NCBI GenBank assembly: GCA_907165135.1
Contig: OU015569.1
Coordinates: forward strand, 1,426,001 to 1,490,000
Direction of reading: 5' to 3'
From: Oikopleura dioica
Taxonomy: Eukaryota; Animalia; Chordata
Length of the DNA: 64,000 nt
The position numbers and the translations under genes are program-made. The notes under the pieces were generated by a model, which was not told where the DNA came from, searched no databases, and saw only the letters and a list, made by a program, of their open reading frames with translations. This document shows positions 54,189 to 63,630 of the stretch, piece after piece; the stretch's first letter is position 1, and every line of letters begins with the position of its first letter.

Positions 54189-57100
54189 ATGCGCCGCGCG
54201 TCGAACACTTACGACCCACGTGTCGATATTCGGGTAAGATTTCTCTCTTTTTACTGAACTGTAAAAACTCGCTTCCTTCTGTTCTTTTTTTCTGATATTT
54301 TACTCCGACTCTTCAGAACTATCCTGTGAGTCCCGAGAAGTACTTTTATCTCCTAAGGAAGGAAGGCAAATTAGAATCTTCTGAAACTTTTGATCTTGAT
54401 CTTGACTCATTCGAGGTTGATACCCTTATTCTATGTTCTCAAAGCAACGCGCTCTCTTTAGTACAACAGTCGGACGACCAACAAAGTCACCCGGGAGCAG
54501 CTTTTCAACGCGATCGACGCCTACAAGGGCAAAGATGCCGACGTCAAAGTTGCAGTGAAGGAGATCCAGCTCATCCTTGGCGAAAATCCCGACCTGATCT
54601 ACGAGGTGGACGATGACGGTGACAACGCGCTGATCCACGCGTGTAAGCGGCAAATCCACCCGCGATACCGCAACTTCTGGATTCGAAAAGGGCCCGACAT
54701 CGAGGTCGTCAACGCACTACTGCACTACGGCGCCGATCCCAATGCTCGAAATCAAGAAGGAAAAACAGCGCTGCATTACGCCTGTATGTTTGAACCGCGA
54801 AGCTCCAAAGTTCGGTTAGTTCTTACTTAAATTAAGCGGTAAAGAGCCTTACGCCTTTTCTAGTGATATGTACGAAACAATCACAAAAATCAACGAAGAG
54901 GAAAAGCGTCTTCTCACCCGAGTCGTCCGAAAACTCATCAAGTAACCTTTTTTTCACTGTCTGCTTTTCTTATTTTCACTCTTCAGAGCCGGTGGTGATC
55001 TTAGACTGCACGATAAAGATAACAAGCTGCCATTTGATTACGCAAAGGTATCATTGATTATTTAGTGACCGTTTACTAACTGTATCAAAAGGAAATCCAT
55101 CAAACACGATTCCGAAACGAGATGGTCAAGTTCCTCAGCTTCCAAAAGGAAGAGTTTATCCGCGACATTGATATGCATGTAGATCCAACTCGGTTGAATC
55201 GGGTGATTCCTGGCTTGAAGAAAAAGAATGCTAGAAAGGTGAGTGAATTAGAATGAAAAGGACGATCCAAGTGTCTAGGAGAAAAAGAGGAAGGAAGACG
55301 AGATTAACTCGTTTTTAGGGCCGCCTCTTCTAAAGGTACCAGATACATTCATCTCTAACTAAAATGAACTATTCAGACTTTGATGGGAAAGCCAAGTTTC
55401 ATCCTTGACCAGCCGAAGCTCAAGTTCACCGGTTTCGGAGTTGTGCTCGAGAAGACCGGAGGCAAGATGGGCGGCTTTGGCGAGGCGTGCTCCATCCCGT
55501 ACATTCACGACTCGACCCTGTTTGACCAGAAGAGCGAGCAGAAGATCCGCATTCGCCACTTGAGCCTCATCATGTCGCGACGTGTTTGGCGCGGGACACC
55601 TGTCACCTATCTTTCCCGCGAAGAGGATCTTCCCGACGAAAAGGGCGACCTGAAGAGTTTCGAACGTTCAGACAAGTACGATCATCTCAATGCTGAGATC
55701 ATGAAGAACTCGACCATTCGTCACCCGAATTTGCTTTTGATGATGGCGCTCGTCCACGATCAATCTTCGGCCCTCATCAAGGGAATCGTTTACGAACGAG
55801 TTGAGCTTGGCACAATGAAACACTTGATGAAAATCGGACAGGTACCAAAACTCTCCTTTGTCATTTTCTAATCGTTACTATTCTAGGAGATCGAGCCCTT
55901 CGAGTGGGTGCCGTTGATGACTCAAATTGCCGACGCCGTTCAATTCCTCCATGAGTCCAATATCATCCACCAAGCGATCATTCCTGAAGCTATCATGATC
56001 ATGTCGTCAAAAGTCGCGAAGCTCGGAGCTCTTTGTTTCTCCCGCCCCGCGAATGACAAGTCTTTCAATTACGAAAGTACCCGGATCCCCGAACGTCTCC
56101 ATCGATACATCGCCCCTGAAGTCCTCCGAAATGACCTTCCAACAAGAGGAGTCGACGCGTTCTCTCTTTGCGCTGTTCTTTTCGAGCTCATGACCGGTTA
56201 TGCTCCCTGGGCTTCCACTAAGGTAAGAAATTTCAAACCTCCATGTACTCAATACCAATTTAGAATGCAAAAGATCGCGTTAGTATCGAAATCCCTGCCG
56301 AGGCTCCGCCGACCGATCTCCATACAACTGTCCGAATCGGCCTCTCACTCGAGCTGCGGGAACGTAAAACTCGCCTTATCGACATCATTTACGTTCTTGG
56401 AAACATCAAGATGATGTACCACCGACTCGAGTGTGAATCGCGCAACACTGGATCCTATACTGGATCTTACCAGACAATGAAACGTAAGTCTGGTGTCAAT
56501 CGACACTGAAAATCATCCATATTTGTAGGCGCACAAAACTTGACCGATTCGCCAAACAGCAAAGCCTCCAGATTCTCCCGAGGTTCGAGATTTTCTCGAC
56601 CCTCAAAGTTGAGCTTTACTCGACGAAAATCTGCAACTCTAGCCGACGTCCGACCAGTGGGAAGTCTCCGATACTTTGAGGAGGTCTCTAGCAAGCGCCA
56701 ACGTAAGTTTAGAATGAGTACACAATCTACTTATACGCATTCAGCCGATTATTTTGTGGACATGAATGCAAATCCGACCCTTGAAGATCTTGACTACACA
56801 CAGCCGTTCCATCTTCAGTACGACACGCATACTGTCTCCGCCCCTCCAACCTCCCGATCGAAGCAATCGTCTATTCGAATGGAGCAGTACCTCACCGAAC
56901 AGCTTCAACACGTCTCCTTCAATAAAGAAGACATCAGTGAAAATGCGCCAACACCCGAGCGCCGACAAAACACTACTCCTGCGCGCGGAAACATCTTTGC
57001 TGATCTCCAGAAGGAAATTGACACGGCCCAGAATGAGCCTTCCGAAGGCTACGACTTGAATGGACTTCGCACTCAACTTGAAGATGCGAAGCGGCAGATC

Positions 57101-59067
57101 GAGGAACAAGAGGCGCAGATCAAATCGATGGAGGAGACACAAGACCTCTACGTCACTGCCCGCGAAGATCTCGACGTAACCCCCGAATGGTCAACGAGCC
57201 ACCCATTTGTCCGCCACGAAAGTCGACCAGTGCCATGCGCGTTCGACACCACTCCGACTGTGAGTCCAAAGAATCCTACGAGACTCAACTGAATGCAGCT
57301 TGGTTCGCCAAGCGAAAGGAGGAAGCTAAGAAGGCAAGAGAAGCAAAGGAAGAGGCGATGTTCAAAGTCCCAGAAGTGCCACAGGTGGACGCCAATTCAT
57401 TGAAGAAATCAGCTTCCAGCACCTCCAACGCGTCCTCCAAAGGATCCTTTAGCGCTGGTCTTATCAACCACTTCGAGCGAATTTCGGCCATTGCTTTGTC
57501 CAAGTCAGAGACCTCACTGCCCACACCACGAATTAAAGAGACAGAGCCACGAGAAGCCAAATCATCAATCTGGTTTGAATTTTCTCTCATGAAACTCATT
57601 TTTTTTAACTCTTTTTAGCCATAACTACATTGATGCGAGCATTGAGGAAAAGATCGAGATCTTGGCAGCGCCGTCTACATCTGCTACCGACACTGCCAAA
57701 TTGATTTTGAATGACACCTTCAACAAGGCAGTCCCAGCAAGCTGCTTGGAAGAAGCTATCGACGACAACAGTTTCGATAGTGAAGTTCTGCTGTCCGGTT
57801 CGGACGTTTCCCGAGCTCGCAGCTATACCGCGAGTATCAGTAGCATTGCCAGCTCGCCCTCTGAGACCTTGCCACGAGCAGAAGAGTCAACTTTTGAGCC
57901 CCCGACTGATCAAACTCTTGAATGGCAGTACGACGACTTTGTCGCCGAAAAACTCTATGGTAAAACAGGCAAAAATCAAATCTCTCAAACAATATCGTAA
58001 GGGCTCGATCTCAATGGAAAGAAAGTCTTCGGAAAGGGCGAACATCACGTCCCCGTGACCGAGTACATCGACGACGTCGATAGCGAAGAAGCTGTAGTCG
58101 TCAACCGCGAAGAGATCGATTACATGGAACCCAAACTCGTCGAAGCAAAGTCAAAGATGCGTGATGCAAACGAAATCCCTCGCATCTCAGTTCAGGTAGA
58201 CTTTATTGACGAGGTCCAGCTTCTTACAATAATTCCAGACCGCCACTCCACCATTTCCCACTCTCCGAAAGACCTCCGGCATGGATGTGCGCCAGCTGCC
58301 AAAGCCCAACTTGGGCTTGAGCGATCTTCAAGAGGAGAGCCTCAACGTCACCCAAGACCTAGGAAAAGTGCCGCAGACACCATCACGACTTTCCTTTCCG
58401 CAAAAACTTGCCAAGTTTCGAAATGCGGAAGCATCAACAAGCAGCGAAAAGTGCATCTTCACTGCTCCACGAAGCAAGGGAGACGTTACTGATAGCGACA
58501 AACCAACTCCGCTGTCCGTAGTGACCTCTACTCCATCCGTGGATCGATTCGGCAAGACAGTAAGTCATTATTTTCGGAATTGGATAGTTGGAAACATAGA
58601 GGAGAATTTGAATCAACTTTCATCGTTCAGGCACAGCTGGAGGAGTTTGATTTGAACGACTCTTTCGAAATCGAAGGAGATACAGCTCTTAGCTTGAAAG
58701 AAGACCAATTAAATGACGAATCCGATTCGGGAGAAGCTTCCGAGATCTCCTTCGTCGCGAAGCGCTTGTCCAGTCCTCTCCGAGAGGCAGAGGAGATCAA
58801 GCAGATGATCAGCGATTCGCAGACATCGTTACTCGCCGCAGAGCAAAAGCAAAGAGCCGCAGAAGGCATTGAAGGGCGACGGGCTATCCTTTCTCGTTGC
58901 AAGCAGCATGAAACCTTCTCCAAGTCAGTCGATTACGAAGGTAAGACGCTCTCTTCGATTATGTCAGTAATCAAAACGATGGAATAGGTTTTGCTGGACT
59001 TGAATCCGAAGAAGATGGAAACATGAACGAGACGATGACCATTTCCAAAGGAGGAAACAAATATTAA
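54189..59067 (+). CDS. TEX14: TEX14-like ankyrin-repeat pseudokinase with a long acidic/Ser-rich tail
   Basis: Ankyrin repeats; AGGDLRLHD (54988-55014); VWRGTPVT; AEIMKNSTIRHPNLLLMMAL; IVYERVELGTM; QIADAVQFLH; YIAPEV; YAPW. These are colinear with human TEX14 as I recall it. Catalytic K, HRD and DFG are not conserved. Confidence 0.8.
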
Positions 59068-60687: not shown

Positions 60688-61628
60688 ATGTTTTTGTGGG
60701 ACTGGTTTACTGGCGTGCTGAAGGGCCTCGGCCTCATGAACAAATCTGGTAAGGAATTCTGTACTGGGATCGGCAACCTGTGTAGAAAACCTGACTCAGG
60801 TTCAGAACATCTGGGTCTTTTCAGCTTCGTTTTCTAAAAGCCGCTACGCTGCTTTTCATTTGAGCTCCTTAAAACCTGACTCAGGTTTTCTACCGAGGTT
60901 CCCGATATCTGATTCTGTAACTAAGTATGTGAAATGCTGTTTAGGAAAATTGATGTTCCTCGGACTCGACAACGCCGGTAAAACCACCTTGCTTCACATG
61001 TTGAAAGACGACCGCATGGGAATCCACGAGCCAACACTGCATCCTACTTCTGAAACGCTTTCCATGGGTCAGTTATCCAGCTTGAAGACATTCTAACGGC
61101 CTTGTTCTTTTCAAGATCTTTAAAATAGTCTTTAGGTGGAATGAAATTCACGACTTTCGATTTGGGCGGTCACGAGCAGGCCCGCCGAGTGTGGAAAGAA
61201 TACTTCCCAGCCGTCGACGGAATCGTCTTCATGATCGACTGCGCCGACCAAGAACGTCTCTACGAATCCAAGGTTGGTCTTTCATCCCCTTTTTCTAGAT
61301 TACACTTACCGCCCCCTAGCATTTGTGTTCAAGAACCCTTCAAGTCGTCCGTTCTTTTACCCTTTAATTTCAGGCTGAGTTGGACCAGCTTCTGACAGAC
61401 GAGCAAGTGGCGAACGTTCCCGTCCTCATTCTTGGCAACAAAATCGACAAGCCGGGCGCTTGCTCCGAAGAACAGCTGCGACACTTTTTCCAAATGGCGA
61501 CCACGGGGAAGAACGCGCCGAGAATAGACGAATTGAACACGCGCCCGATCGAGCTCTTCATGTGCTCGGTGCTGAAGAAGCAGGGCTACGGCGAGGGCTT
61601 CCGCTGGTTGGCCAACTACATCAACTAG
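60688..61628 (+). CDS. SAR1: Small GTPase SAR1 (COPII)
   Basis: MFLWDWF; GLDNAGKT; HPTSE; [12 protein letters not shown]; NKID; [16 protein letters not shown]; 4 exons. Confidence 0.98.
60764..60911. mobile_element. Family B MITE in the first coding intron of SAR1
   Basis: CTGGGATCGGCAACCTG left end, degenerate right end, perfect 8-bp TSD attctgta (60756-60763 and 60912-60919). Confidence 0.88.
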
Positions 61629-62738: not shown

Positions 62739-63630
62739 ATGTCTGGCTTGATCGGACTTGGCGGATATGGATCGGACTCAGATTCGGACTCTGCTTCCGG
62801 AAGTCCTGGCTCAAGAACGAGAGCATCGTCGTCTGGAGAGATGGAAGTCGATGGAAAGGACGTGATTACAGTTGGCGACGGGGATGCCAGTATGGATGAA
62901 GAGGAGATTGTCAATGCCGATGCAGCGGCCGAATTTTCTTCGGAATTGAGAAGGATGAGCAGGTATTTAAATAAAATTTTAAGGCCCAATAGACACCGTC
63001 TCTTAGTGCTGGGCTTCCTATAAGCATCCAACTTCCTCCACCTCCAACTGGCAAAATTGACCAGAACTCGAAAGTCCAGTACTTCAAAATGTTAGACGGC
63101 TACAAGAAAGGAATGAACATCAACAAGCAAATCAAGAGTGCGAAATCCTACAGGAACCCTTCAATCTATTCCAAGCTCATCGACTACTTCAACATCAAAG
63201 AAGGCGGCTCCAACTTTCCAAAAGATGTCTTTGACCCGACAAAGCTTAAAAATGATACGAAGTTTCATTACAAGGTTTGAAATTTGATAAAATAATAATC
63301 TCGATATTTCAACTTCCAGGAATTGTCGAAACTTCAAAATCAGCTTGAGGAAAAACGCCAAAAAGAAGAGAAGCAAAGAATCCTTTTGGCGAGAGAGAAA
63401 GAAGCAGGTCCCGCGGTTGTCAGCTCAAGATCGAAAAATCACAATGGAAAGTCCATCCCCGCCGTCGGTATTCTTGCCAAGAAGACATCAAAGGCTGGTT
63501 TTGAACATTATTTACTTAGAAAGAGATTGCTTGGGAATTTATTTTTCAATACTGAAAGGCTCGTGAAACGCTCAAGAAAGAAATAGGCGAGGTGAAATTT
63601 GGAAAGAGCAAATTTATGAGTCCTGATTAG
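62739..63630 (+). CDS. SAP30BP: SAP30-binding protein (HCNGP domain)
   Basis: LGGYGSDSD N-terminus; LPPPPTGK...KSYRNPSIYSKLIDYFNIKEGGSNFPKDVFDP. The stop is at 63586 if the 3' end is unspliced, or 63630 if a GC-AG intron at 63494-63558 is used. Confidence 0.85.

Follow-up and report, generated by a model that had tools for sequence, protein, structure and literature searches.

A probable TEX14-family ankyrin-repeat pseudokinase in the appendicularian Oikopleura dioica

Intercellular bridges between germ cells are, as far as we know, ancient, and in mammals only one protein, to our knowledge, is established as essential to them, namely TEX14, which we take to be the human kinase SgK307. Oogenesis in Oikopleura takes place in a coenocyst with ring canals. 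Within the window analysed here, a stretch of 64,000 nucleotides of Oikopleura dioica DNA (contig OU015569.1, positions 1,426,001 to 1,490,000), a gene on the forward strand at window positions 54189-59067 combines ankyrin repeats with a kinase-like domain and a long tail, raising the question of whether an appendicularian carries a TEX14 of its own and what such a protein would do at ring canals. The best explanation overall, to which we assign a probability of roughly 0.8, is that this gene is the O. dioica member of the TEX14/NKF5 family, most likely the ortholog of TEX14, with a dead kinase fold and a presumptive scaffold role.

The exons in the window are 100% identical to the NCBI protein CAG5094548.1 of Oikopleura dioica (Oidioi.mRNA.OKI2018_I69.XSR.g13658.t1; 1355 amino acids), referred to below as P0171. 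The NCBI model of the locus (OKI2018_I69.XSR.g13658) carries no protein name, and the North-Atlantic O. dioica counterpart is present in NCBI as 'unnamed protein product' only (CBY13614/13615/40181). The window gene was searched exon by exon, while full-length comparisons made use of the database proteins P0171, P0002 and P0172.

Domain layout and kinship with TEX14

The protein consists of three N-terminal ankyrin repeats, a kinase fold and a tail of about 700 amino acids that is mostly disordered, with a coiled coil and a series of conserved islands. Pfam recognizes the ankyrin repeats in the exon at 54462-54814 and the kinase C-lobe in the exon at 55887-56222, two separate exons, and reports no family in the exon encoding the N-lobe or in any exon of the tail. 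The N-lobe exon likewise gives no match at E <= 1 against the PDB, and in a language-model search it falls, weakly, among fragments of kinases. Along the domain, the motifs of an active kinase have been lost: there is no Gly-rich loop, Leu stands in for the beta3 Lys and Ala for the catalytic-loop Asn, HRD is changed to HQA, and DFG has become GAL/LC. Structural landmarks have been retained, including HP, APE, the alphaC Glu, the subdomain IX Asp and the subdomain XI Arg. With all catalytic residues gone, the kinase domain is predicted to be catalytically inactive. A first-pass annotation of this DNA had described ankyrin repeats, a degenerate kinase and a long tail, a layout borne out by Pfam and by the motif alignment; the four TEX14 blocks that it had cited are all present in the TEX14 sequences that were retrieved, as AGGDLRLHD exactly, RHPxLLxxMA, VYERVxxGT and APEV.

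An exhaustive search of 1.84 billion representative proteins with the C-lobe exon returned the gene itself, as a fragment, and P0002, a transcript protein of 1225 amino acids with 74% identity in this exon, together with many multi-kinase proteins whose scores are summed over several domains. Once each match is ranked by its highest-scoring domain, the first family with a name is a catfish 'inactive serine/threonine-protein kinase TEX14-like' (P0130, 53.6 bits), which is also the sole match of the N-lobe exon among about 150 kinases (20.6 bits against fewer than 6). With residues 1-560 of P0002 as the query, the best foreign match over the full span is TEX14 of Hyla sarda (E 1.4e-18, 85 bits, 28% identity, 71% of the query), the remaining foreign matches being ankyrin-repeat or generic-kinase proteins that mostly cover 10-30% of the query, with a maximum of 41%. 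Solved kinases in the PDB, such as PknB, MAPKAPK2 and Aurora A, reach at best 42 bits with the C-lobe exon and no more than 44 bits overall, over about 170 residues only; we know of no solved structure of TEX14 itself. A separate profile search brought back TEX14s, by construction, along with ankyrin noise and no invertebrate TEX14.

Ankyrin repeats followed by a kinase fold are also the common order of ILK, TNNI3K, RIPK4/ANKK1 and DAPK, and in ILK and other ankyrin (pseudo)kinases this arrangement is used as a scaffold, as is proposed here. Membership of one of these other families is nevertheless highly improbable, given that none of them occurs among the best 60 PDB matches of the C-lobe exon or of P0171:60-640, and ILK, TNNI3K and RIPK4 display no specific sequence affinity to the Oikopleura protein, while TEX14 aligns across most of the ankyrin-plus-kinase query at the score given above. 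Pfam also detects no protease domain in the tail, which speaks against a protein of the ankyrin-kinase-protease type.

The kinship with TEX14 is also recovered by a hidden Markov model (HMM) of the TEX14 kinase domain that was built from vertebrate TEX14s and the metagenome protein P0268 and contains no appendicularian sequence. P0002 and P0171 score 124.9 and 123.8 bits over positions 7-304 of this model and rank directly after the true TEX14s, the next kinases from outside the family standing at 95, 94 and 76 bits. In a maximum-likelihood tree of 55 kinase domains, calculated with IQ-TREE under the site-heterogeneous LG+C20 PMSF model, four appendicularian and six TEX14-type domains form one clade with ultrafast bootstrap (UFBoot) and SH-like approximate likelihood ratio test (SH-aLRT) values of 100/100, the appendicularians being sister to the remaining TEX14-type domains. 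The clade keeps an SH-aLRT value of 100 after removal of the 37 columns that cover the Gly-loop/VAIK, catalytic-loop and DFG regions, and the grouping is therefore not just a product of shared motif loss. The 'TEX14-like pseudokinase' that the first-pass annotation had read into an appendicularian-type genome has thus been upheld: the gene belongs to O. dioica, its best full-span foreign match is TEX14, and both the HMM and the phylogeny, the latter across these 55 domains and not a full kinome, place it with that family.

A further trait lies outside the kinase domain. The last ankyrin repeat closes with the signature GGDLRLHD, which is found in 25 out of 25 family proteins that possess the region and is missing from all 388 other proteins fetched, with about 1000 ankyrin-repeat ends between them. 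The overall architecture, running from ankyrin repeats through a kinase-like domain to a long non-globular tail, is colinear with that of frog, fish and mammalian TEX14.

Vertebrate TEX14 (Other/NKF5) and the Oikopleura protein have in common three ankyrin repeats at the N-terminus that close with AGGDLRLHD, an overall length of 1200-1500 amino acids with a long and poorly conserved tail, and the blocks HP.LL..MA, VYERV..G(T/S), APEV, PW and ER..L.D. They also share the loss of the HRD Asp, of the catalytic-loop Asn (Ala in both) and of the DFG Asp, although TEX14 reads HRS where the Oikopleura protein reads HQA. The appendicularian protein differs in having lost the beta3 Lys as well (VTYL where TEX14 has VTVK), in carrying an insert of 26 amino acids within the last ankyrin repeat, and in lacking the GPPX3Y motif, any tail similarity and a detectable pre-kinase extension.

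An additional relative is the ORF (open reading frame) of the P0268 cluster, from ENA metagenome assemblies, whose contigs are eukaryote-like and reach up to 485 kb. It likewise combines AGGDLRLHD-bearing ankyrin repeats with a dead kinase (HCN in place of HRD), reaches 422 bits with the HMM of the TEX14 kinase domain, of which it is itself a part, and falls within the clade of TEX14 and appendicularian domains, as sister to the frog, fish and mammalian TEX14s and not to the appendicularians. Unlike the Oikopleura gene, it is intronless, a single 4.6-kb ORF of 1523-1546 amino acids (L001 1377-5954; L003 10001-14572), and it contains no GPP motif.

Within the appendicularians, identity between P0171 and P0002 amounts to 73% in the ankyrin repeats, 69% in the pseudokinase, 45% in the linker and 40% in the tail, where the invariant islands are TLEW.YD.FV.EKL.GLDL, LV.AK.KMRD, TPSRLSFP.KL.KF, PTPLS.VTSTP.VDR, AEEIK and QHETFS. 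A conserved core followed by islands in a divergent tail is a pattern that would fit a scaffold with linear docking motifs. Between tunicate and vertebrates, the part that has been kept is the ankyrin-pseudokinase core. Marine fragments from ENA, JGI and Logan (P0003, the P0036 cluster, the P0086 cluster and P0167) show 46-57% identity to the C-lobe exon and have the variants IIHQ.I.PE and AKLGM.CF in common with it; P0167 joins the Oikopleura proteins in the tree with 100/99. Other appendicularians, or else pelagic tunicates, are the probable source of these fragments.

Several observations weigh against the assignment to TEX14. The outgroups in the tree were the kinases returned by the searches and not a full kinome, and the oyster, schistosome and sea-urchin NKF5 proteins stood outside the set. 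The stem branches of the appendicularian and TEX14-type groups are both long (0.98 and 1.19), so that some long-branch attraction is possible. An HMM of a 51-position stretch preceding the kinase domain of TEX14 finds all vertebrate TEX14s at 59-102 bits and no appendicularian protein; this stretch is treated here as variable, not family-defining. Over its full length, the ankyrin region gains no higher score than generic ankyrin proteins do, tail HMMs run in both directions between appendicularians and TEX14 remain below 2 bits, which amounts to no similarity, and the C-lobe exon on its own scores some bacterial kinases about equal to TEX14-like proteins. Inspection of the flanking ORFs by eye and with Pfam revealed no microsynteny with the neighbours of human TEX14, presumably RAD51C and SEPTIN4.

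The long stems, the undetectable pre-kinase extension, tail and CEP55-binding motif, and an HMM margin over the best active kinases of about 30 bits, not hundreds, would also suit an independent origin, in which appendicularians made their own ankyrin-pseudokinase from a TKL-like or other kinase and the grouping with TEX14 results from fast-evolving dead kinases attracting one another. We consider such an origin distinctly unlikely, because the clade withstands removal of the catalytic-motif columns, the tree was calculated under a site-heterogeneous model, and the exact GGDLRLHD stands at the same architectural position, outside the kinase, in proteins that also share the domain order and an N-lobe matched by TEX14 only. 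Membership of the TEX14/NKF5 family thus remains the reading that we prefer.

Gene model, transcription and the frame break

After correction, the gene comprises 15 exons and about 1317 codons, as delimited by ORFs, GT-AG sites, RNA joints and the relatives. All introns are GT-AG and measure 42-228 nt, mostly 42-49 nt, giving a compact eukaryotic gene. The initial coordinates hold, with 54189 as the first base of the ATG, 59067 as the end of the stop codon and a spliced gene on the + strand between them; the start is backed by P0002, which begins with MRRASN. The features, in window positions, are as follows.

54189..54233, +: exon 1, with the start codon, MRRASNTYDPRVDIR; ORF and GTAAGA donor, P0002 starting at the same MRRASN
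54462..54814, +: exon 2, the first two ankyrin repeats and the beginning of the third; Pfam Ank_4 (9e-12) and Ank_2 (3e-9), donor by the RNA joint 54815-54863
54864..54941, +: exon 3, 78 nt, an insert within the last ankyrin repeat; RNA joints 54815-54863 and 54942-54986, present in P0171 and P0002
54987..55047, +: exon 4, closing part of the last ankyrin repeat, carrying the family signature AGGDLRLHD; motif, RNA joints on both sides
55092..55238, +: exon 5, linker between ankyrin repeats and kinase; RNA joints 55048-55091 and 55239-55376, no Pfam family, 45% identity to P0002
55377..55841, +: exon 6, kinase N-lobe in degenerate form (Gly-rich loop missing; Leu for the beta3 Lys); alignment, match to the TEX14-like P0130
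55887..56222, +: exon 7, core of the kinase C-lobe (HRD as HQA, DFG as GAL/LC, APE kept); Pfam Pkinase (2e-15), RNA joints 55842-55886 and 56223-56263
56264..56483, +: exon 8, last part of the kinase domain, ERKTRLIDIIYVL; ORF, aligns with the TEX14 C-lobe end ER..L.D
56529..56702, +: exon 9, Ser/Arg-rich start of the tail; ORF, donor at 56703 backed by P0171, P0172 and P0002
56745..57572, +: exon 10, tail including a coiled-coil stretch, with the frame breaking at the C-run 57180-57184; RNA contig 56746-57413 unspliced
57180..57184, +: C5 homopolymer within exon 10, a one-base deletion relative to RNA and relatives; RNA contig with one extra C behind 57179
57619..57959, +: exon 11, tail, islands AAPSTS..AKLI and TLEW.YD.FV.EKL; ORF, RNA contig 57648-57953
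58002..58195, +: exon 12, tail, islands GLDL and LV.AK.KMRD; ORF, island alignment
58239..58559, +: exon 13, tail, islands TPSRLSFP.KL.KF and PTPLS.VTSTP.VDR; ORF, RNA contig 58298-58542
58631..58940, +: exon 14, acidic tail, islands AEEIK and C.QHETFS.SV; ORF, island alignment
58988..59067, +: exon 15 with the stop codon, preceded by a 47-nt intron; ORF, same C-terminus as P0171

The gene is transcribed and spliced in poly-A RNA. Contigs from a marine-plankton poly-A metatranscriptome (run X1), 95-100% alike to the gene, cover 22 of 30 bins along its length and contain six GT..AG joints, five of which agree with the exon model drawn by eye, and exon 3 was detected only through such joints. 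Three bulk runs labelled with the species (X5-X7) yielded almost no reads, 0-3 poorly fitting ones, too few to bear on expression. In the tail, the 42-nt intron at 56703-56744 is skipped alike in P0171, P0172 and P0002.

The one place at which the frame does not stay open is the run of five C residues at 57180-57184. The RNA contig has six (C6), by which the open frame is restored across the run, and the resulting reading, TPRMV.EPP...RKSTSAMR (in detail TPRMVNEPP and RKSTSAMRV), agrees with P0172 and P0002. The fifteen-exon model accordingly reads through this position, and the C5 of the reference is probably a homopolymer assembly error or an allele. A 47-nt intron at 57176-57222 was considered in its place and rejected, as the RNA contig runs straight through and the extra C mends the frame.

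The break could alternatively mean that this individual carries the gene as a decaying pseudogene, the window having C5 where an open frame requires C6 and the NCBI model having had to invent a splice. We regard this as extremely improbable: the poly-A RNA contig carries the extra C and an open frame, the frame is open at all other places, the domains are 69-89% conserved across three appendicularian lineages, and a single-base homopolymer miscount is a plausible assembly error. An expressed gene with a miscounted or polymorphic homopolymer is the account retained here.

The NCBI model P0171 departs from the corrected gene. It bridges the frame break with a false splice, producing a frame-shifted stretch of 25 amino acids, EWSTSHPFVRHESRPVPCAFDTTPT, that is absent from P0172 and P0002. 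It includes an extra exon, EKKRKEDEINSFLGPPLLK, at window 55279-55335, which the RNA contig skips by joining 55238 directly to 55377. It also has extra upstream exons from 53886 that are non-conserved.

Downstream of the gene, the ORF list contains at 60860-61628 (+) a sequence with the look, by eye, of a SAR1-type small GTPase in three exons with an NKID motif, and at 62739-63586 an ORF that by eye resembles HCNGP/SAP30BP. The upstream ORFs have no Pfam family. According to its NCBI locus name, the gene lies on 'XSR' in the Okinawan assembly, a label that we take to mean the X-specific region. If that reading of XSR is right, a TEX14-family gene would lie on a sex-specific region, and sex-biased dosage could conceivably be of interest.

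The CEP55 motif, the tail and ring canals

In mammals, the GPPX3Y motif in the tail of TEX14, which binds the EABR of CEP55, occupies CEP55 and excludes ALIX and TSG101, so that the bridges stay open, as summarized in a review. Among the TEX14s fetched here, mammals have GPPxSSY, and frog and catfish have GPPxxY. The appendicularian proteins contain neither GPPX3Y nor GPPX2Y, and P0002 and P0172 are without any GPP, a further result that counts against an equivalence with TEX14. The single GPP of P0171 falls within EKKRKEDEINSFLGPPLLK, the annotated exon that the RNA contig skips, and could mislead motif searches. The sequence TATPPFPTL, with which the exon at 58239 opens, was weighed as a degenerate form of GPPX3Y and rejected, having no Gly and no Tyr; the relatives read APPRMPTL and ATPELPKL at this place. 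According to a 2026 review, CEP55 itself is traced to vertebrates only, and Drosophila is reported to be without it. Because the motif is absent, and with CEP55 reported from vertebrates only, the mammalian GPPX3Y/CEP55 mechanism is unavailable to the Oikopleura protein.

What the protein may do can be outlined from its domains. It would act as a non-enzymatic scaffold, whose ankyrin-pseudokinase module and tail islands would dock partners at the midbody or bridge, or at the kinetochore, as TEX14 does. If it is active at ring canals, it would have to work via another contact, for example with centralspindlin/MKLP1. MKLP1 binds mouse TEX14 in vitro.

The first-pass annotation had gone further, suggesting a ring-canal factor and, with it, an older origin of TEX14-based bridges. 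That suggestion is unsupported, in view of the missing GPPX3Y, tails unlike those of TEX14 and a CEP55 reported from vertebrates only. A role at ring canals is possible, as a guess from homology, and we hold it to be unlikely that the Oikopleura TEX14 ortholog stabilizes germline ring canals, whether in the ovarian coenocyst or in spermatogonial syncytia, without CEP55. Should it prove true, bridge-keeping by an ankyrin-pseudokinase core would predate the vertebrates, and the GPPX3Y/CEP55 clamp would be a later, vertebrate addition.

Age of the family and meaning of the Oikopleura gene

The 2026 review of germ-cell bridges traces TEX14 to vertebrates only. Kinome catalogues already include invertebrate members: that of the oyster lists an Other/NKF5 protein, EKC23692.1, whose best match is human SgK307, and that of Schistosoma haematobium lists Smp_131630 as Other/NKF5, 'Tex14', transcribed in males only. 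The sea urchin is described as lacking only the Axl, FastK, H11 and NKF3 subfamilies, and NKF5 is not among these. The oyster and schistosome entries imply that the family is not confined to vertebrates, contrary to the review, and a pre-vertebrate origin is thus not new at the level of the family. Neither of these catalogued entries comes from a tunicate, and both are taken here from their catalogue description. In the library searched, no paper mentions both TEX14 and Oikopleura. With NKF5/Tex14 already catalogued in invertebrates, the Oikopleura gene is an unnamed new member of a known family.

In practice, a protein of O. dioica that had no name receives one, together with a corrected gene model, and the overall gain is moderate. 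The gene also provides a concrete candidate in an animal with coenocyst ring canals, where injection of DNA or RNA is an established means of knock-down. For the family, a tunicate ortholog would separate two layers of TEX14, an older ankyrin-pseudokinase scaffold and a younger CEP55-binding motif that blocks abscission.

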